A DNA stretch of 64,000 bases from NCBI GenBank assembly GCA_029953675.1, contig JAMWBK010000006.1, positions 2,108,001-2,172,000 on the forward strand, written 5' to 3'. Shown piece by piece: positions 13,230-54,619 of the stretch. Both the position numbers and the translations under genes were made by a program. The number at the start of each line of letters is the position of its first letter. Position 1 is the first letter of the stretch. The stretch comes from Rhodosorus marinus CCMP1338 (Eukaryota > Plantae > Rhodophyta). The notes under the pieces were generated by a model that saw nothing but the letters and a program-made list of their open reading frames with translations, had not been told where the DNA came from and did not search any database.

Positions 13230-15686
13230 CCGCTGTCAATACGCCGCGCGCGCTGAGCCCGACATGGGAATGAACGGGTGTCCTGGTGGAAAAACGAGAA
13301 ATGTACAGTGGTGTCGTGCGGTGGAGACAAAATTTTGACCAGCTCGCCCAAAGATGAAGAGGAGGGGTCTACGGCTCCCGCTAGACCGAGAAAATGGCGC
13401 AAGGATGTCCGTTTCTGCCATTTTCGAGTAAAAGTGGGTGAGCCTGGGGAGCCTTCCTCGTTCTTCGAACGCGAAGCCCGGATTGACTTTTTCCGCAAGA
13501 GGCAAGACGACCAGGAGCGCCAGGTACCTAGAATGTACGTCAGGGGGGGCTAGCAAGACCTATCTTTGCTGAAGGTGAAGAGGTTGTATGTTGGTTGTTG
13601 CTTGGTTTTCGCTGGCTTCTAGCCATTAACACCATACTTCAACGGGAATCGAACCGGGGACTCACAGCACCAAATGAAATCAGAACGAGATGTGACAGAT
13701 AGATGAGAAATATTCATTATTTTTTTTATCCTCTCAAAGCCCGTCGGTAAGGAGTCCTCCCGCTAATGGTTTTCCAGTGGAATGTGGTTGAAAGGAAAAC
13801 CTAGTTGCGGGCTACTACGGGTTGAATATGTTCACAAGATTTAGATAATTTTAAATAATATTTGAAGTCCAATACTTCACAAAATTTCGTCCACCCCCCG
13901 CACGGGATGCACGGGATTGGTAATCAAAATGCACTCATTTTTGGTTGCTTCGGAACTCGAAGAGCGTTGGCGGTCGTTCAGACTCGTAATAATCCATGAG
14001 TTTGTTTTTTTTCCGGGGCGTACGACCGGGTACGAACACACTAGAAATTTTACCCCCCTTGATCATCCTGTTGTAATTGTCCGAACGGTCAGCTGACAAA
14101 AACAATTCTATTCACATGACATTAATATGTCCCCAAAGGTAACGTTTTCAGGAGTTCAACGGATGGAGCAAGAATTACTTATTTATGACGTTTAAATCAA
14201 TTAGTAATATCACGAAACTGTCGAAATCATTGCTTCCTCCAAACCCCCCCCCCTCCCCGCCCACACCTCCAGCTGTTTATGCGTCTGTCTCGTTGGATCG
14301 CGGTTGTCACCTAGGACAAGATACGGATCCAAAAAAATGACTTCTGAAGCAATAGATACGGCGTTGGAAAAAGCGGGGCTCTTGGCCATCTCGGTATATG
14401 GGCGAACAAGAAATCATCGATTTCTACCATTTCAGCCCGTGAACGAGAATTCTCCAACTTCTCTATCCCCCTAGCCCACCAACCACGAAAACATAAAGTA
14501 CTCACATTTTTATTTCGTTTTTCATGACAAGTTTTCCCATGTGGAGATGATTTCCAGTGTGGGTTTTTTTTTCATTAGAACTCCGGGCGTGCGTTTTTTT
14601 TTAGTACCGATGAGTAAGATTGACCCTTCAATTCTATTTCTCCGGAAACCGACGAATAAGAAAAGAAGAAGAAAAAATTAATTATTGAGAGAATACTTTG
14701 ATTTTATTTCATGTTTCACATTCTCCTGGCAAAAGGAACACTTGCCAATGAACATCGTCCCTTAGGCCCATATAAAATTACCATATTTCAATACATCTGT
14801 ATGGCAATCTACCCAAGGGTGGGCAGAAACGTCAATCCTTGGTATTCTCCCGGGAATCCGTAGTCCCCCCCCCCCTACAACAAAAAGACGTTGGAAGATG
14901 AAAAGAGTCATTCTAAATGGTGAAAAGATCTAAAACCAAATGAGAAACTGTTCGAAAGTGTGATATCGGAAGGGATGGGAGATTTAGGAGGCGGACAGGG
15001 GGTTAAAGATGTTTGGGAATTAATAAGGAATGTGGGTTTTGTAAAGACGGATTTTCACACTCCGTGAAGGGGGAAAAAATCAAGAATCTAGAGGGAGAAC
15101 GGAAGGAAGGGGGGTTAGGGGGTTAAGGATTATGCGTTGACGTGCCGTTTTTTCTATTTTTGAATGGTTTTGGAGGGTTCTTGAGTTCAGGTGGCGTTTG
15201 TGTTTAACGCCTTGGATTTCTCGTTATGTCGTTGACGCATGACACCCGTTTTCTTCCGATAATGCAGAAGTGGAGGAGAGGGGAGGGGAAGGGGGAGGGG
15301 TGAGCTTAGATTTGGGGATTACGGTTGTGGATGAGAGGAAAGAGTGAGGGGCTCGGGAGTGATGATGAGGAGCTAGGTTTTTGTTAGCTTCTCTTTGGTT
15401 AGTGGAGAGGTGTTTTCGGGGTGTGGGGGAAAGGGGGAAGCTTCAAGTCTTGGTATTTTGGTTTGTGAGGATCGGTGCGCTGTCCTTGACTTGGGACGTT
15501 TGTTTTCGGCTAGCCTGTTACGCTGGGGCTTTTAAAAGTATTTGTGTAGAGGGTTGAAGGGGTTTGTACCCCTTGCGTGCACGGTGGTAGGAGATTCGAG
15601 GCCGTGCTTTGCGGTCTGATTGCACCTGCGCCAGATCTGGAGGTGCGGGCGAGTGTCGTCTTCGTGGCGGTGCGTGTTCTTTGAGG

Positions 15687-17402
15687 ATGGGAAAGGGAAC
15701 CAATGGGAATCATCGGCATGGGACTCCGCGGAGAAGCGCGGGGCTTCCTCGTCGACTTGACGACGATTTTGTGCTTTCCTCTCCCAGCGCGAAGATCGGA
15801 TCCGTCCCTTGTCCAGCATATAAGGTAGATACCCCCATCAGAACAGTGGAGAAGATTGAGACACCACGTCGACAACTGGAGAAGATGGATAAGGTGGAGA
15901 GAGTGGAGGTCGCAAGGAGGCCGCAGAAGCGACAAAGGATCTCGTCGACAAAGCATAGCGCATTTTTTGAGTCCAGTTGGCCGCGGTCCTCCGCTGAGCT
16001 TTGGTCATGGGACCCGCTCGTTCATCATTTCGATGACATCTCGGAATACGACATGAAATTCTTGAGGTCTCCGCTTGTGCCTGAGACAGGAGGTCCTGAG
16101 AATGCGGAGACGCTAAAGAGGGTGCTGCCGTCTGGGAATGAACCACTGGGAAGACACTACTCCTGCGCTTGGCTAGTGGAAGACTCGAAGGAAGTGAACG
16201 GCACTCGAAGGGAACAGTACAGTGCAAACGCTCCCGTGGAGTTTGACAAGCCAATGCTTCCAGAGTATGTCTACACTTACGATCCCGCGACAAGCGTTTG
16301 CGAGGAACTCAATGGGAAGCGTGGCGATGATGGACGTGATCCTTTGGATGAGGCAAAACTAGAGGAGCGGAAAAGCTGCAAGATCAGGAGCTCCAGAGGA
16401 CGACCGCGTGTTCGGCCGCAGGTTACTGACTCCAGCGATCGCAGCGCTTGTAGACCGAAGACTCCTGCGTCTCCTGTCACAGATGGCTCGACATCGTGCG
16501 GGCTGCGATGCTGCTGCCCGGAAGAGAATTCGACGTCGCTCGTGTCCCACGTGAGTGTTGTAAGGCCAGGGAGAGCGCGGAGTGGGAATGAAAGCCCCGT
16601 GGTAGGATCAGTGATTGCAAATCCACCCCACTTGACCAGATCTCATTCGCTTCAAAGTAAGTCAACGTCAACGAGTTTGGTCAAGACGTGGCGAAAACAA
16701 TCATCGTCAACGCCGACAACATACAACGTTAAGCTTGTACTTTGTGGTACTGGTAGAGACTTCAACTTGGAAGCTTCATACGAAGCCTCGATTAGGTTGA
16801 GAACGGGAAGGATATCTTCTGGCAAAACTGATAAGCCCGTCGAAGGGTTTGCTGAGGATTTAATTGACTACAAATTCTCCACTCCTGGGGCAGAAGCTGA
16901 TCGGGATGAACTGCAAGAAGAAATCAAGAGACTGCGGAGGGATCTGTTGGCTGCCGGAAAGGCTCACAAGCCACTCAGGGATCGGCTCCGGATGAAGGCT
17001 AAGAAAGAGGTTTCGCGGTCGGAGAGGACTCGCAAACTTGTTGAAGAGGAGCGGTCAATAATTGAGGAGCTTCAGAAGCTGAAGCAGGCAAGAGCGCGAG
17101 TGGATAAGAACAAGGAAACAGCGTTGCCTAGGCTTGAATTTGACAGTCCCACGCATAGCGGAGGCAGGCACTCCCCTTACAAAATGAAGAAGAGAAGGGG
17201 CCCCTCTCGGTTAACCACGAAGTACCTTCAGGAGTTTTTTGAGTTGAAAAAGCTACGCGATGATCTGCGTAGGATACAAAACTTGGCGGACTTGTGCTAC
17301 CAGAAGGAGCTCGTCAGCCGGGAGGCGACGGAAACTTTGTTTCAAACGTTGAAGGCGCGGATGAAGACTGCATGCAATCCCGAGCTGTTCGAACCTCAAT
17401 AA
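15687..17402 (+). CDS. ADA3: Transcriptional adaptor ADA3/NGG1-like (SAGA/ATAC HAT module)
   Basis: Single ORF. PLGRHYSCAWLVED resembles TADA3 PLGKHYSQRWAQED. The C-terminal DELQEEIKRLRRDL...LRMKAKKEVSRSE helix resembles the TADA3 coiled coil. Similarity is recalled, not searched. Confidence 0.72.
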   Translation: MGKGTNGNHRHGTPRRSAGLPRRLDDDFVLSSPSAKIGSVPCPAYKVDTPIRTVEKIETPRRQLEKMDKVERVEVARRPQKRQRISSTKHSAFFESSWPRSSAELWSWDPLVHHFDDISEYDMKFLRSPLVPETGGPENAETLKRVLPSGNEPLGRHYSCAWLVEDSKEVNGTRREQYSANAPVEFDKPMLPEYVYTYDPATSVCEELNGKRGDDGRDPLDEAKLEERKSCKIRSSRGRPRVRPQVTDSSDRSACRPKTPASPVTDGSTSCGLRCCCPEENSTSLVSHVSVVRPGRARSGNESPVVGSVIANPPHLTRSHSLQSKSTSTSLVKTWRKQSSSTPTTYNVKLVLCGTGRDFNLEASYEASIRLRTGRISSGKTDKPVEGFAEDLIDYKFSTPGAEADRDELQEEIKRLRRDLLAAGKAHKPLRDRLRMKAKKEVSRSERTRKLVEEERSIIEELQKLKQARARVDKNKETALPRLEFDSPTHSGGRHSPYKMKKRRGPSRLTTKYLQEFFELKKLRDDLRRIQNLADLCYQKELVSREATETLFQTLKARMKTACNPELFEPQ

Positions 17403-27321: not shown

Positions 27322-28693
27322 TCCCTCCCACCGAAGAGGCGCGGGGTCGGGCAGATTCAGCAGCGCGATGAAAATTAGTGTAGTATCGAATCTGCTTCTT
27401 CGTACTAGCAGTTTGTGGCAACTTATGAGCCGCGAACCATCGAGCATCGGCTACAGTTTCTCCATCAAAGTAAACCAGGTACTCGCTGGTGTGTCTGGTT
27501 TCAGCCGATGTCGAAGTACTGACGTGATTATTCCGGTCGGTGATTCCGTCGTGAAATGCCCAAACTGGGCATTCGGCAACATTATCGTGGACTCCTGTAA
27601 TTTCCTCAGCAGGGAAACGTGGAAAGTTGGATGCATATCCATCTCAGCGGGTAACGTTCGCGTGTAAGCAACAGCATTCACCTTACGTGCGACCTTGAAA
27701 GGTCCGATGTACCGGGGTCTGAAAGGTTTCGGGTCGCGTAGCGGCAGGTTTGTTGTCGATAATAACACCACTTCGACAGTGGAAAACTCCGGGTCACGCC
27801 TACCTGCATCATATCGTACTTTCTGCACTTGCTTAGCATAAAGCATATTATTCCGCGCTTCCGTGTATTGATCGTGTTGATGCCGTAGCAAAACTTCAGC
27901 TGCGTCAGGAAGAGGAGAAAGGGTAGCCTCCTCGGCACGTGGTACAGTTAATGTCCCTGGTAGGTCGAGATTGCGCCAAAAGTTCAAAAGGTGAGTACTT
28001 CGTCGCTTAGAGATTTGAGTGTTGCACACCAGCTCCGTCATGGGTAGATCCGAGGCCCAGGTTGCTTGGATACTCAGTTTGTCCATCCGTCTGGGGATGG
28101 TACGCAGTACTCATGTTGGTTTTTACCCAATCAGGGCGCCTTTTCAGCGACAGTGTCGGCGTTTCCTACTGCGCTCTCCTTTTAACTGCTGTATGGTAGG
28201 AGGTGCCGACTTCGAGACAACCGGATACCTGTCTGGATTTCCCCAACAGACCCGTTGAGCATGTCCCTTTTTACCGCAATAATCGCAGTCAACGTTGGCT
28301 TAGTTCCGTTTCTGCAAGGCTTGTGTTCCGGGTTGATAAGCTGTGACCAGATCTGGTACCTCGGCTTACAGTGGTTTGGGGCTTTGCTTTTCTCGGAATT
28401 TGACAGGGTTGATAAGGTGGTCACGAACGGGTGGGGGGGAGTTTAGGGAGGCGCCTGCGCCTGACCTTGCTTTCTCTCCCCTTTTGGGGGTTATGGCGAG
28501 CTTTCGATGGAGCGACTGAGGGTTTATGAGCTATGACCGTTTTGGTTCGGATGAGGTGGAACTAGTGGAGCCCTGACCACTGTGGCAAAAAACAAGGGAG
28601 GGCGCTTACGATGGCGAGAGAGTTCTGCGTGGTGGGTGATGACGTATTCGTTACCGTAAACTTATCCTCGATCTTTTCGATCCCGAGTACCAG

Positions 28694-46497: not shown

Positions 46498-47539
46498 TGT
46501 ATACTTAGGATCCGTTAAACCCCTCCCCCAGAAGACTCCAAGTCGTCACCCGCAAACACTTTTCCTGATTCCACCCTGACTTGCTCAATCCTGTCTAGCA
46601 TCACTACGATCACACCGCATACAAACCTCTACCCACCGATCTCCCAACTTCACGCTTCATCCGCCTTCCTAAGCTCCGTACTGAACTCTCACTGCCGCTG
46701 TGACCATAACGCAAAATTATCTCAACCTCTTCGGCCGCTGTCTCCTACATTCGTCACCCCAACTCTTTTCGAGGTTGATCGACCAAAACGCCACAGGGCG
46801 CCCACGACCGTCGATCTGTATTCCCGAAGCGCGCAAGCAGATTGCGATGAGAAAAAAATTCTCCAGCAGTGGTGATCGAGTATTTGAGAGAGTCTACTAA
46901 TGGAAGATGAGGATCTTCCCCTGTCATCTTCTCCACTAGACAACCAAAACTCTTCTCTGAAGTTCATCGGCTTGCAGCTACACAACGGCAAGTGCGCGGA
47001 CTAGCTGAAGAAGTGGTTGACGTCGCTGTGTGCCCTTAAGACAGGTAGCGATGAGAAGACTGGTCTCCAGCAAGAACATGCTGCTGGTTAGTTGAAAGGG
47101 TCAGCCAACCAACTAATGCGATCTCCGACCGTCGACTTCCCCACTAGTCAACCAGAACTATTCTGTAAGTTCATCAGCAAAAACGGATCCGCAGCCAGAC
47201 TAGGCGTTTGGAATAGTTGCTGACGTCGTTCTGGACGATCGCAACGGGCCAGAAAACTTTTTCTCTCTAGTAGTGATGACGAAGTAATTGAGAGTATCGA
47301 CAATGGCGATCTCTATCGGTCGTTTTCTCTACTAGTCAACTTGAGAACCGTCCAGCTGCTGGTTGCCAGAAGATCCCTGCGAAGAGGTTGGCAATGATTT
47401 GTTTTCCGTATTTGTTGGTCGAGAACGTCTCGGTCGGTGGAGTTCGGAAGAGGGTTGAAGGACTAGTTTGGAAGTCACTAGGATTGGAAAGTTTGGAACA
47501 CTGAGTGTTGAAAGCAACTAGGAGAGCTTTTCTTTGAAG

Positions 47540-48262
47540 ATGAGCGGAAAGAAAGAGATCTTGGTGAGGCGTGGAGGTCGAGGTCGTCTGTCGAATCTTG
47601 GGAGGGGCGATGTTGTGAAGGAGATTGTCGTGGAAGATGCGACTGGAGATGAAGCGAGCCCGGCGGACCACTCGAAGACGGTCGTACTTTTGTGCTCGGG
47701 AGTAGTTGTGTTGGCGTTTGTGCTTGGCTGGACAATGAGGTTGATCCTACTTGGAGTGGGTATTCTTAGGCCTGTGCTGCTGACGTCTTCCGCAATGAGC
47801 AGGAAAAAGCCAGAGGTAGAAGGCAGGTGGATGTTGTATTGGATGTTCTGCGGCCTTTTCTTCCTCGCAGAAACAGCGTGGGTTCATAATGTTCGGTAGG
47901 CTTTGCCAGAAAATTTCTGCTCAAACGGAATTTAAACGACCTTCAGCTTTCCTAAGAAAAACGTCGTTTATTCTTTGATTAGTTACGCATTTCTCTTCAC
48001 CGCGACGGAGATCGCCATACTCTTCCTTCTGTCCCAGAACGAAGCAAGGAATTCTGAGCTTATCTACTCATGGGTTCTGTCTCCAGTCACTGAGGAGTTC
48101 AAATTTCACGTGGAAACAGTCACATGCAAATGTTCTTCATATGTTGATCAGGTTTGGAGCGCATTCAGCGAAGTTACTATTGGCTCTGCGAAAGCCTTCT
48201 TCAGGTCCCTGGCCAGATCATCTAGGACGGTCAGCGATCGGCTAGACCAAGCTACTGGCTGA
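47540..48262 (+). CDS. HVA22/TB2-DP1/REEP family ER-shaping membrane protein
   Basis: LLGVGILRPVLLTSSAM...EGRWMLYWMFCGLFFLAE...|YAFLFTATEIAILFLLSQNEARNSELIYSWVLSP follows the YPAYASxKA...QWLxYW...E...GAxxIY pattern. Confidence 0.75.
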
Positions 48263-48515
48263 TGGTCTTTTGGTTATGCAATGTTTACGGTGGCTTTGTC
48301 TTATTTAATAACCGTCCAGTATATACGCAAAGTTATATAACTTTGCGTATTTCTGTATCTCTGTGTTTCCCGTGTTTCACCAATATATATTGTTGAAATG
48401 GAGCTTCGATCAAGCAATGGCAACCTCTTCCTCAAGCTGTACCGTGTTAGGTTCCACTTACATCCAGCACGGGTCTTCAAGAAATTTTTCGGCGAGGAGC
48501 TTTCTCTGGAAAAGC

Positions 48516-48902
48516 TCATCGGATGGATCTTATTGAACGAGATCCCATCGAGCGAGTATCTGTGGAAGCGGTATTCCATTCGCGTCCGCCTGAGTAACGT
48601 CGACGGCTCGAGCTGCTTTCCTGGCCTTCTCCTGCTCCAGTGACATACTGAGAAACCAAAACAGAGCAAAAGTCTCGTTAGTATATCGTCAAAGGGCTCT
48701 GGCTCTGAGCCTTCCGCGTTTTCCTTGAGGAGCTTACAATAGTTGTTACATCCTCCAGTGGGCTTCTTGAAGTTTCGCCGCTGCGAGTGAGTTTACCAGT
48801 TGGACATCTTACGGTGACAAGTTTCTTACTAGCTCCAGCTCCTGCCCCTGCCCGGAGTGGCACATAGTTCTCCTTCTCCCACTCGTCAACTACCTGAGCC
48901 AT
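48516..48902 (-). CDS. 98-aa protein with KEN box, D-box and C-terminal IR tail (candidate APC/C inhibitor)
   Basis: Exon 1 is 48902-48738. The 90-nt intron (GTAAGC...CTAAC...CAG) is 48737-48648. Exon 2 is 48647-48516. The product reads ...WEKENYVP...RSPLEDVTTI|Y...RSIRSIR*. Confidence 0.75.
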
Positions 48903-50225
48903 TGAAACAGGAATATCTCGAAAACCCGATCCAAATCAAGAAAAAGTCAATACCTAACGCCGCCGCACTCAACTCCCACCTGTAGGAATCTCCACGCGCA
49001 CAAGCAATCCAGATCCGTATCTGCAAGAGAGCCTGAGTTGACCCTGACGCGAGCAGGAGAAGGGAAAAACTCTGTCATTCCAAAACGAAGCACAAAGAGA
49101 AACCAACTCGCCAGTAAGAATTCAAATATTCAAAATATTCAATCCACAAGGAAGTTGTTTCAATCATTATTGATCCGCCCACGTTGGCCAATGACGACTA
49201 TTTCTATTTTATGAAGAAGTACCTAGTTTACAGATACTGTTTCCAAATACAGTCCACAATATTAATGTTGTACAAAACATGAAACCAAAATCTATGCTAT
49301 ACACTGATTTGGGGTTTCCCTTTCAGTATTCGCTGGTAGGTTTGGGAGGACTCTGGACTTTCCGGACCTGGTAGGCTTATGTCTCAGGTTGCCGCATCGG
49401 GGTTCCATTAAGGATCGCCTCATCGTAACTACTGTCTTGGATTTCGTCGCAGGAATCTTCTTCCGCCGTTTTTGGTGGTCCAGATGTACAGTCTGATTGT
49501 CCCCAATGCGGCGGGGGCCGGAGACCACCTTCACAGGTCAAGGAGTGATCCTCGCGCGCCTTGGCGGAGAGATCAGAATGATCACAGTAAGAGAAGATTC
49601 AAAGAGTCTACCGAGCAAGACTCTCTAATCACCCAACGACAAACTGTTCTCAACGAGAGGATTACGATCCCGGTCGAATAGGAATGGTTATAAACTCTGT
49701 ACACTTCGGTGAGCATTGGCCACAGATATGGACGAAGCGACTTGCGTACAGGATTTTCGGACCTGTTCTAAAAACAGCAGTAAACAAGCCAGGGCTCAGA
49801 TTTGCCCTACTTCGGAAGCATTGTCAGACCCGCCCTTTCAGATTTATGATCGAACATTGATCTTGGCTTTTGGCAAACCGCATCCATGTGTAGACGTCAG
49901 CATAAATGCTGTTCCTTCAGTTCATTGTACCTAGCAACACTTGGAAAAGCCAAGAATCAATTGTCCTGACTCTTAAACAGCGTGAATCCTATCTCCAAGC
50001 TCTCGAGCCGGGTTTGTGACCTCACGTGTACAGACGGGCGAGATGAAGATCCTCATCGATGACTTTTTCATTTGGGACGAGATTTTGGGTTAGGAATGTC
50101 GAGGAGCAGGAAAGCCGGCGCTTTTTTTTTCAAGTGATAGTTTAAGGGGATGCGGTAGGAAACCGGAGAAGACAGTGATTCTTCTCGAGCGTATTGACTT
50201 GCTGCATAGCATTGCTCGAAGCGAC

Positions 50226-53128: not shown

Positions 53129-54619
53129 ATGGGTGAGGATCCAGCGAAGGGGGGAGGTGATATTGGTGGTGCTGATGGAGCTGGTGGAGATTCTGCTCAG
53201 CAGGGAGGAGCTGGAGGATACCCACCTCTAGATGCGAACTATGCGACATATAATGCGGGAGCTGACGGGAAGGAAGGGTACCCGACAGTAGATACGTCGG
53301 TTGGTGCTCAGGTCCCCAGTACAACGGGGGGGTATGGTGCGTCAAATCAGGGTACTGGGTACCCCGTAGGCACTGGGTATCCGGCGATAAATCCAACGGG
53401 CTATCCCGGCGCAGATCAAGCAACCGGTTATCCACCAGCTAACCAGGCAACCGGTTATCCGCCAGCTAATCAGCCAACTGGGTATCCACCGGCTGGTCAA
53501 GAAACTGTGTACCCAGAGGCAAATCAAGCAACTGGGTATCCTCCTGTAGGTGAAGAAGGTGGGTACCCAGCGTCGGGTGCAGCAGCAGGGTATCCGGCTC
53601 AACCTCAGGTTTATCCAAACTATGCAAATCTTGGATACGGAGACACCGCTGCTGTGGGTACGGGAGGGTATGAAACTAAAGCGATTCCCGGCCAGACTGC
53701 TGTTGATCCATCGCTGTATTACAAGGATGAGATAGCACCCGAGTCGGGTGTGAACGATGGGGATCTGGAGGAGAAGGGTGGTGTCTCTGTCAAACCAGCG
53801 GGGGGCGCAGGGGCCGCGGCAGGAGCGTTCTTCGTAGCAGCGCCACCTGAGGCCTATACGTATCAACAAGCAACGAATACTGAGTTTGGAAAGGGCGCGC
53901 CTGCTCCCGGTACAGTGGATATCGAGAGCGGACAGCCTGAGAATGAAGTGAATATCTCCCACTCAGGTGTGAGAAACGCGTTCCTGCGCAAGGTGTTCGC
54001 AATTGTTACAATACAGATTCTCATCACAACTGGGATATCATTGATGTGCGTTTACATCGTGCCGCTGAGGGAGTTTTGTGCAGATAACTGGTGGATTTGG
54101 CTCGTCTTCTTCTTTGCGGCTATGATCTGTCTCTTCATTCTTCAGTGGAAAAGACACAAACACCCTCAAAACTTGGTATGGCTGGGAATCTTTACAGTCA
54201 TTATGTCTTTTTTCGTCGGAACTATATGTGCGACCTACGCAGACAACGGATACGGATCCGCAATCGCGTATTCGTTTGTGTCGACTCTGGCGATTTTCAT
54301 AACCATAACTGCTTATTGCTGGTGGTCGAAGAAAGACTTCAGCTTCCTGTATGGATTCATCATCGCGTTCTTCATTGCGATTGTCATCGCATTTATTGTC
54401 ATCTGGTTTGTCGATCTCTTCGGAGATTTAAGTCGCTGGGCCTGGTTTGGTATCCAAATAGCGGGTGCGCTTCTTGTAACTGCAGTCCTCTTGTTTGACT
54501 GCTCCCAGATTGTGAACAAGTACCCAGTGGATGAGTACATTCAAGGAGCAATTTCGCTGTACGTGGACTTTATCAATCTGTTCCTCTGTCTGCTCGGAGC
54601 TTTCGGATCAGCAGGATAG
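53129..54619 (+). CDS. TMBIM/Bax inhibitor-1 family (lifeguard-like) protein with a long GYP-repeat N-terminus
   Basis: VRNAFLRKVFAIV, seven hydrophobic segments, KKDFSFL, and DEYIQGAISLYVDFINLFL. Single exon. Confidence 0.93.
   Translation: MGEDPAKGGGDIGGADGAGGDSAQQGGAGGYPPLDANYATYNAGADGKEGYPTVDTSVGAQVPSTTGGYGASNQGTGYPVGTGYPAINPTGYPGADQATGYPPANQATGYPPANQPTGYPPAGQETVYPEANQATGYPPVGEEGGYPASGAAAGYPAQPQVYPNYANLGYGDTAAVGTGGYETKAIPGQTAVDPSLYYKDEIAPESGVNDGDLEEKGGVSVKPAGGAGAAAGAFFVAAPPEAYTYQQATNTEFGKGAPAPGTVDIESGQPENEVNISHSGVRNAFLRKVFAIVTIQILITTGISLMCVYIVPLREFCADNWWIWLVFFFAAMICLFILQWKRHKHPQNLVWLGIFTVIMSFFVGTICATYADNGYGSAIAYSFVSTLAIFITITAYCWWSKKDFSFLYGFIIAFFIAIVIAFIVIWFVDLFGDLSRWAWFGIQIAGALLVTAVLLFDCSQIVNKYPVDEYIQGAISLYVDFINLFLCLLGAFGSAG

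Follow-up and report, generated by a model that had tools for sequence, protein, structure and literature searches.

A conserved, spliced microprotein gene overlooked in Rhodosorus marinus, a red alga, encodes a candidate APC/C regulator with a KEN box, a D-box and a C-terminal Ile-Arg

Inhibitors of the APC/C that consist of little more than short binding motifs are already known, namely Mes1, Acm1 and the OSD1/UVI4 proteins. Mes1 of Schizosaccharomyces pombe, a meiotic inhibitor and at the same time a competitive substrate of the APC/C, is a very small and domain-less protein of about 100 amino acids. It acts through a KEN box and a D-box, both of which bind coactivators (PMC3084671), and these motifs are followed by a C-terminal MR, in the order KEN, D-box, [M]R (PMC3406007). 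The land-plant inhibitors OSD1/GIG1 and UVI4/PYM, which are 216-292 amino acids long, have in common the order GxEN or KEN, D-box and a two-residue tail ending in Arg, and the D-box of OSD1 (residues 104-110) is essential for binding of CCS52A1. Acm1 of Saccharomyces cerevisiae, a pseudosubstrate inhibitor of Cdh1, is disordered, places a KEN box with Pro at +3 and a high-affinity D-box on one propeller, and carries a CDK site that overlaps a degron (PMC3690534); it furthermore needs an A (ABBA) motif and has no IR or MR tail. Inhibitors of the Mes1, Acm1 and OSD1/UVI4 types are apparently evolutionarily unrelated (PMC3406007). Tails of this kind are also present on the APC/C itself. The APC3 dimer is the binding site for the IR tails of the coactivators and of APC10, tails which Nek2A imitates with its MR, and an IR tail can also be accepted by the C-box site on APC8, which is related to the APC3 pocket (PMC5717348); the fission-yeast coactivators, for example, end in ...TLIR and ...MKIR. 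Finally, securin and plant PATRONUS are small, fast-evolving and disordered proteins in which an N-terminal KEN (or DEN) is followed by a D-box and which elude homology searches (PMC3195147); an IR tail is not a feature of securin.

The nuclear gene described here lies in a 64-kb window, by which we mean the whole stretch of DNA that was analysed, from contig JAMWBK010000006.1 of the CCMP1338 assembly GCA_029953675.1. The host is indeed a red alga, as the initial annotation of this DNA had taken it to be, namely Rhodosorus marinus of the class Stylonematophyceae. An isocitrate-dehydrogenase-like open reading frame of the window matches NDN08_000888 of this species, on a contig of 2,472,615 bp, with 100% identity, and the assembly was recognised by an exact record of the neighbouring Bax1-I protein; a neighbouring frame of 239 amino acids had no such record. 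Its assembly comprises 31.2 Mb with 8392 genes and 24,821 introns and was annotated by BRAKER trained on RNA-seq (PMC10250338). Conversion of the annotated neighbours to window coordinates (Table 1) places no called gene between 48262 and 50226 in the public annotation of GCA_029953675.1, and neither the 98-aa protein nor the open reading frame of its first exon is present in a collection of 5.8 billion proteins. The microprotein gene is therefore unannotated, and the suspicion that a product of this size had been missed by annotation was well founded.

On re-reading, the two-exon model put forward in the initial annotation proved correct in every sequence detail, that is in its coordinates, in the signals of its 90-nt intron and in its 98-aa product, to which the joined exons translate identically. 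Between the splice sites listed in Table 1 the intron has a CTAAC branch site at 48681-48677, 29 nt ahead of the acceptor, and then a pyrimidine tract. It is also true that the mechanical list of open reading frames carries exon 1 alone, read through into the intron as a frame of 74 amino acids (48678-48902). The first in-frame stop 5' of the start codon is a TGA at 48938, and because the 5' leader contains no ATG in either of the two species checked, neither in the window nor in the relative described below, the microprotein starts at the first AUG of the transcript.

Table 1. Features of the microprotein gene and its annotated neighbours in window coordinates.
Feature	Position	Strand	Basis or remark
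Start codon ATG	48902-48900	-	sequence
Coding exon 1, residues 1-55 (MAQVVDEWEKENYV...RSPLEDVTTI)	48738..48902	-	translation; ends ...ACT ATT (Thr54 Ile55) at 48738
Spliceosomal intron, 90 nt	48648..48737	-	GTAAGC donor 48737-48732, CAG acceptor 48650-48648
Coding exon 2, residues 56-98 and TGA (YVTGAGEGQESSSSRRRYSGGREWNTASTDTRSMGSRSIRSIR, then stop)	48516..48647	-	resumes with TAT at 48647
Stop codon TGA	48518-48516	-	preceded by ...ATC CGA (48524-48519)
KEN box codons K10 E11 N12, context EKENYVP	48867..48875	-	Pro at +3
D-box codons R46-I55, RSPLEDVTTI	48738..48767	-	final codon abuts exon 1 border exactly
C-terminal Ile-Arg (IR tail) codons, residues 97-98	48519..48524	-	stop directly after
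5' UTR, at least 133 nt	48903..49035	-	alignment to orthologous transcript L001
3' UTR, length uncertain	47321..48515	-	L001 alignment; antisense through convergent HVA22-like gene
Segment TTIYVTGAGEGQESSSSR			within the 98-aa protein of Rhodosorus marinus
Annotated gene, 235 aa	45430-46497	-	public annotation
Annotated gene, 211 aa, HVA22/TB2/DP1-like	47540-48262	+	public annotation; intron 47896-47982
Annotated gene, 277 aa	50226-51149	+	public annotation

A word-indexed search of the 5.8-billion-protein collection returned as its sole matches two proteins, P0001 (94 aa) and P0002 (67 aa), from one MMETSP transcriptome (JGI 3300017118). P0001 shares 81% amino-acid identity with the window protein over the full length. 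Its transcript (L001, 1739 nt) aligns collinearly with the window in two blocks, nucleotides 1-289 with 49035-48738 and nucleotides 290-1635 with 48647-47321, and skips precisely the predicted intron 48737-48648, so that the junction proposed from the splice signals is the one used in the orthologue. A second transcript, L002 (1832 nt), is collinear with the window and keeps an intron of 93 nt with identical GTAAGC, CTAAC and CAG signals; an intron-retained isoform is thus also present in the relative, and the intron differs between the species by indels of 2 nt and 1 nt. From the GT-AG polarity it follows that the transcript corresponds to the minus strand of the window. Since the final 30 nt of exon 1 encode the D-box, the intron-retained isoform would keep the KEN box and the D-box and lose the IR tail; the peptide that retention would add is not conserved between P0002 and the 74-aa frame of the window. 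Both transcripts run on for about 1.2 kb past the stop, antisense across the whole HVA22-like gene, whose intron is unspliced in them. MMETSP assemblies are unstranded, and overlapping convergent mRNAs can therefore be fused by the assembler. The long antisense stretch may belong to a genuine, extended 3' UTR, or it may have arisen when two convergent mRNAs were joined in the assembly.

The comparison between the window and L001 also reveals how the frame has evolved. With 19 synonymous changes at about 70 sites and 19 non-synonymous changes at about 212 sites, dN/dS is 0.28 (Fisher p = 4e-4), or 0.34 in exon 1 and 0.23 in exon 2; dS (0.34) is the same as in the neighbouring HVA22-like gene, for which dN/dS is 0.18. 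Substitutions at codon positions 1, 2 and 3 number 11, 8 and 20, respectively, and thus show an excess at the third position. The coding sequence contains only two indels, each of 6 nt and both in exon 1, exon 2 having none, and frame-breaking indels (1, 1, 2, 1, 4, 3 and 7 nt) start two bases past the stop (48514), where the sequence is 82-85% identical between window and relative and conserved as much as the coding sequence. The frame closes with tcc atc cga tga in the window and with tca att cga taa in the orthologue, so that Ser96 and Ile97 have changed synonymously and the stop codon differs in identity (tga versus taa) but not in position. By virtue of these synonymous changes and of the changed stop codon at an unchanged position, the exact IR terminus can be said to be maintained, and the frame including this terminus, as it had been proposed, is under purifying selection. 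Two other open reading frames, one of 122 amino acids (48301-48669, minus strand) and one of 81 amino acids (48398-48643, plus strand), were rejected as coding frames, as both are broken in the relative by 1-nt indels just past the microprotein stop. Given that the orthologue splices the intron, that dN/dS is 0.28, that indels come in units of 6 nt, and that the frame begins at the first AUG and ends at a conserved position, we are highly confident that the locus is a genuine gene that codes for protein and has the two-exon structure described.

The encoded protein is basic (net charge +5) and rich in Ser, Gly, Arg and Thr, with 14 Ser and 12 Arg, and 76% of its residues are disorder-promoting. 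Lysine occurs four times, at K10 within the KEN box and at K26, K27 and K37. AlphaFold2, run on an input alignment of two rows, gave a mean pLDDT of 46.9 and a pTM of 0.13 with no residue above 70, and a short helix at residues 7-12 of low confidence; as modelled, the microprotein is intrinsically disordered. No family was found at E <= 0.1 in a Pfam scan and no match at E <= 10 in a sequence search of the PDB, and HMMER, searching 1.84 billion representative proteins exhaustively with a profile, detected no homologue beyond P0001 and P0002. The third match of the latter search, a bacterial repeat protein of 1259 amino acids (P0123), was dismissed as spurious, being matched via its low-complexity repeats. 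A scan of JGI metagenome contigs with a back-translated pattern, in a collection evidently without the MMETSP sample, produced 504 pattern matches, none of which was confirmed. As far as is detectable from these searches, the family is confined to Rhodosorus-like algae, and because other red algae yielded no homologue its function, if real, would be lineage-restricted. A motif scan of the protein found no ABBA, Mad2-interaction, C-box, RVxF, PIP, TEK or securin-type [DE][IVL]E motif; a Cy-like KKL[VL] motif and a basophilic RRY[ST] site are conserved in both species.

The three motifs named in the initial annotation are all present, and all lie in predicted disorder, a setting in which such motifs can work. 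KEN comes first, then the D-box and then the [I/M]R tail, an arrangement that functions in OSD1 and has been described for Mes1 (PMC3406007). For the KEN box, D or N is preferred at -1 and Pro at +3 (PMC3690534). The window protein has E at -1 and Pro at +3, and P0001 keeps the KEN itself with Q at +3. The substrate consensus of the D-box is RLPLGDISN and the tightest-binding peptide of natural residues is RAPLSDITN; Pro is favourable at position 3, as is an aliphatic residue at position 7, Val being the weakest of I, L and V at the latter position in peptide binding, and Asn9 and the residues following it contact APC10 (PMC12401543). RSPLEDVTT fits this consensus at positions 1, 3, 4, 6, 7 and 8 and has Thr instead of Asn at position 9. 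Its positions 2-3 form an S/T-P minimal CDK site within the D-box. The D-box of the orthologue, RTPLADVTTI, differs at x positions only, and the codons for P48 and T53 have changed synonymously.

How often would such a combination arise by chance? Among 2,000,000 shuffles of the protein's own composition, KEN occurred in 0.68%, RxxLxx[ILVM] in 6.8% and an [IML]R terminus in 1.0%, and all three together in a fraction of 4e-6, which falls to 5e-7 if D-box position 6 has to be acidic; these frequencies have to be read in the light of the pattern having been defined after the sequence was seen. None of the 197 six-frame ATG open reading frames of at least 50 amino acids in the 64-kb window carries all three motifs. 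If average amino-acid frequencies are assumed, chance alone is estimated to give about one protein among 8392 of typical length that contains KEN, RxxLxx[ILVM] and [IML]R-COOH in this order. The triad nevertheless appears to stand above this chance background, as all of it is found in a fold-less protein of 98 residues that contains nothing else, and as the D-box fits the extended consensus. Conservation of the motifs in the single orthologue carries no weight, since at 81% background identity all nine critical residues would be kept with p ~0.15.

The initial annotation had gone further and likened the protein to pseudosubstrate regulators of the UVI4/OSD1 or Mes1/Acm1 type, pointing out that RSPLEDVTTI is strikingly close to RTPLRDITHI. 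The plant motifs had been quoted correctly, Arabidopsis OSD1 reading GRENM ... RTPLRDITHI ... TMR-COOH (Fig. S1, PMC3406007). We rebuilt the alignment of 17 OSD1/UVI4 sequences from this figure, with which every sequence length agrees. With the corresponding profile HMM the window protein reaches 3.3 bits and P0001 4.7 bits, scores that are equalled or exceeded by 76 and 23 of 2000 shuffles, respectively; hhalign assigns a probability of 6%, with a single-comparison P of 0.006 for the D-box block. Both methods align ten columns only, RSPLEDVTTI to RtPLrDITai, and of the conserved family blocks other than the D-box (MPEARDR, LPSWYP, AIERRR, EKKLLNSI and RTLMSMR; in longer form LPSWYPRTPLRDIT..AIERRR and EKKLLNSI..VEK) none occurs in the microprotein. 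The RxxLxx[LIVM] of the family is found (RSPLEDV, residues 46-52; RTPLADV in the orthologue), as is a GxEN/KEN N-terminal to it in both species, but the terminal residues are Ile-Arg in both species whereas all 17 family members end in MR or LR within ...LMSMR. As the profile matches the ten-residue D-box and nothing else, the protein does not belong to the OSD1/UVI4 family. The closeness of the two D-boxes is real, both sequences having been given correctly, yet it largely reflects that both are near the general optimum, since the consensus, the best binder and the D-box of the cyclin TAM (RAPLGDITN in the mutagenic primers of PMC3406007) all look alike. What likeness there is to OSD1/UVI4 would, on this comparison, be one of motif architecture only, as is the case with Mes1.

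Set beside the known systems, the algal protein resembles Mes1 in being very small and domain-less and in its motif order, a likeness by description and not by sequence. Its tail is IR where that of Mes1 is MR, and any likeness between the two would be convergent because they come from different eukaryotic supergroups. With OSD1/UVI4 it shares, apart from the motif order, a D-box of the R[ST]PLxD[IV]T type with an S/T-P inside and a residue other than Asn at position 9 (H, A or S in OSD1/UVI4), but KEN and D-box are 33 residues apart as compared to about 20 in OSD1, the protein is less than half as long and ends in IR instead of MR, and homology is not detectable. Like Acm1 it is predicted to be disordered and has a potential CDK site overlapping a degron; different from Acm1, which is longer, neither the algal protein nor its orthologue has a match to the ABBA pattern [FILV]x[ILV][FHY]x[DE]. 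The tail would correspond to the [I/M]-Arg-COOH that CDC20/CDH1, APC10 and Nek2A present to the TPR pocket of APC3 or to the C-box site of APC8 (PMC5717348), except that the known tails are located on folded subunits or on a dimeric kinase substrate whereas that of the algal protein, whose binding we infer, is located on a disordered chain of 98 residues. In contrast to securin, the protein lacks a recognisable separase-binding segment in the 43 residues past its D-box. If functional, it would add to the motif-only APC/C inhibitors a non-homologous variant of about the size of Mes1 with an IR and not an MR tail.

These features suggest how the protein might work if its function is carried by short linear motifs. 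The KEN box (residues 10-12) would bind to the top face of the WD40 propeller of a CDC20/CDH1-type coactivator and the near-optimal D-box (residues 46-54) would enter the blade-1/7 groove of the same propeller, while the free C-terminal Ile-Arg would occupy the APC3 TPR pocket or the related APC8 C-box site, a pocket that normally takes the IR tails of coactivator and APC10. Both CDC20 and CDH1 are present in red algae (PMC11231608). By docking at three points the protein would compete with high avidity, as a (pseudo)substrate of the Mes1/OSD1 type, and with the degron receptors occupied, cyclin-type substrates would be destroyed later, until the inhibitor is displaced, phosphorylated or ubiquitinated. 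Thr in place of the APC10-contacting Asn at D-box position 9 would make for poor engagement of APC10, the S/T-P inside the D-box (R-[ST]-P-L) could serve as a CDK-operated switch, and intron retention would provide a form with KEN box and D-box but without the IR tail. An inhibitor would fit better than a plain substrate because position 9 of the D-box is not Asn and because no other activity-bearing part is apparent. Then again, the loss of Pro at +3 of the KEN box in the relative (Q), the E at -1, the missing Asn9 and the Val at position 7 would all speak against the inhibitor reading. We therefore regard a Mes1/OSD1-like competitive (pseudo)substrate inhibitor of the APC/C as a plausible but tentative assignment. 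Still less secure, and on balance doubtful, is the more far-reaching claim that the protein would be the smallest known three-point pseudosubstrate inhibitor of the APC/C, the first regulator of the APC/C to be identified in red algae, and the third independent invention of the combination of KEN, D-box and [I/M]R-COOH after Mes1 and OSD1/UVI4.

But does a protein with these motifs have to act on the APC/C at all? It is quite possible that it does not and that the gene encodes a lineage-specific orphan microprotein, for instance a nucleic-acid-binding or nucleolar Arg/Ser-rich peptide, in which the motifs are fortuitous. Its coding status is solid, yet only short motifs tie the protein to the APC/C, its homologue is confined to one close relative whose motif conservation is uninformative, and a composition rich in Arg and Ser raises the odds of RxxL and xR-COOH. 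What speaks against fortuitous motifs is the rarity of the triad among shuffles of just this composition, a D-box that agrees with the extended consensus at six positions and thus beyond its R and L, and an exact C-terminus that has been preserved through synonymous changes and an altered stop codon. Alternatively, though in our view rather improbably, the protein might be a substrate of the APC/C and not an inhibitor. It would then be a small cell-cycle effector whose destruction takes place at anaphase/G1, for example a separase binder like securin or an inhibitor of CDK-cyclin complexes like SIAMESE. Substrates classically have an N-terminal KEN with a D-box after it, and securin has its KEN near residue 10 and its D-box near residue 60. 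The conserved Cy-like motif and basophilic site would suit such an effector, and tail-bearing substrates such as Nek2A are known (PMC5717348). Furthermore, typical CDK inhibitors are undetectable by BLAST in red algae according to a study that makes no mention of UVI4 or securin (PMC11231608), and securin homologues have been found in animals and fungi only (PMC3195147). Nevertheless, no second functional region is recognisable after the D-box, the motif scan found neither an ABBA nor a Mad2-binding motif nor the securin-type pseudosubstrate [DE][IVL]E (a crude proxy), the lack of any Pfam family at the threshold used includes the lack of a securin match, and of the few lysines one lies inside the KEN box.

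Two further readings concern the nature and the ancestry of the gene. If the transcript were in the main a natural antisense RNA against the convergent HVA22-like gene, non-coding and with the 98-codon frame incidental, this would account for the extent of L001 and L002 across that gene with its intron unspliced and for the conservation of the region past the stop on a par with the coding sequence. We regard such a non-coding RNA as very improbable in view of the low dN/dS, the restriction of indels in the coding sequence to multiples of three, the first AUG and the conserved stop position, and the convergent mRNAs may in any case have been fused by the assembler. Hardly credible, finally, is that the protein is a highly divergent true homologue of the land-plant OSD1/UVI4 proteins, inherited from the archaeplastid ancestor. 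The shared motif order, a D-box block that is identical in 6 of 10 positions to RSPLRDITS[IV] of rice and sorghum, and the single-comparison P of hhalign for this block could be taken to point in that direction, but the HMM scores fall inside the shuffle distribution, the low hhalign probability comes with nothing aligned outside the D-box and with all other family blocks absent, the protein has 98 residues as compared to 216-292, and the exhaustive profile search of 1.84 billion proteins returned no plant protein. Taken together, we have a well-supported new gene and, judged by its motifs, a reasonable functional hypothesis, according to which the gene product is a plausible regulator or substrate of the APC/C.

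Whatever its function, the locus exemplifies a gene for a microprotein, conserved and spliced, that was overlooked by an annotation trained on RNA-seq. Cell-cycle inhibitors and securins evolve too fast for homology searches outside animals, fungi and land plants, and in red algae no APC/C inhibitor or securin has been identified so far (PMC11231608, PMC3195147). If validated, the candidate inhibitor would offer red-algal cell-cycle research a first handle on the control of the APC/C and would provide a minimal natural scaffold for studies of three-point docking to the APC/C. It would also strengthen the case for the KEN, D-box and tail architecture as a recurrent, convergent solution, and regulated retention of the intron that follows directly upon the D-box could toggle between tailed and tail-less forms of the protein.

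In the related alga whose transcriptome (MMETSP) encodes an orthologue of the microprotein, spliced and intron-retained isoforms of the microprotein transcript are found side by side (contigs L001 and L002, respectively, in the table below). Because the final residue of the microprotein D-box is encoded by the last codon of exon 1, the product of the retained-intron isoform keeps both the KEN box and the D-box and continues into a short, non-conserved tail without the C-terminal IR. The D-box is also abutted by an ExxR tetrapeptide, ETSR (residues 43-46; window 48765-48776, minus strand), with the Arg common to both motifs. ExxR is the minimal separase-site pattern and ETSR is conserved in the relative; the match may well be due to chance.

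Upstream of the gene, about 90-100 nt before the point where the homologous transcript starts, lies a tandem GATTGAATATTTTGAATATTTGAATTC (49121-49143, minus strand), in which TTTGAA occurs twice and ATTGAA once. These hexamers resemble CHR elements, which control G2/M genes in animals.

Elsewhere in the window, the annotated Bax1-I (TMBIM-type) protein (53129-54619, plus strand) is extended at its N terminus, ahead of the membrane domain, by some 280 residues of degenerate, GYP-rich repeats of the [AP]NQ[AP]TGYPP type. For the longest ORF of the window (15609-17402, plus strand; 597 aa) no Pfam match was found at E <= 0.1. The ORF at 27451-28086 (minus strand) matches Pfam PF24626, the Tf2-1-like SH3 domain, at E = 1e-14; it is probably part of a broken-up integrase gene from a retrotransposon of the Ty3/Gypsy type.

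Past the microprotein stop, the relative's transcript contigs run on for about 1.2 kb, antisense across the entire convergent HVA22/TB2/DP1-like gene, whose 87-nt intron (47896-47982, GTAGGC...TAG) is unspliced in these contigs. Two readings fit this extension: the 3' UTR may be long and serve as a natural antisense transcript, or the assembler may have fused two convergent mRNAs that overlap.

Features of the microprotein transcript and its convergent neighbour
Feature	Window	Strand	Details
Retained intron	48648-48737 (equivalent)	-	L002 nt 290-382
Contig extension beyond microprotein stop	47321-48515	-	L001 nt 420-1635
HVA22/TB2/DP1-like gene	47540-48262	+	convergent to microprotein gene

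Over the first ~150 nt after the stop (48358-48515, minus strand) the window and the relative share 82-85% identity, which exceeds the synonymous-site identity of about 73% (pS 0.27) between the same two species and suggests that either the 3' UTR or the 3' end of the HVA22-like mRNA, which overlaps it, is under constraint.
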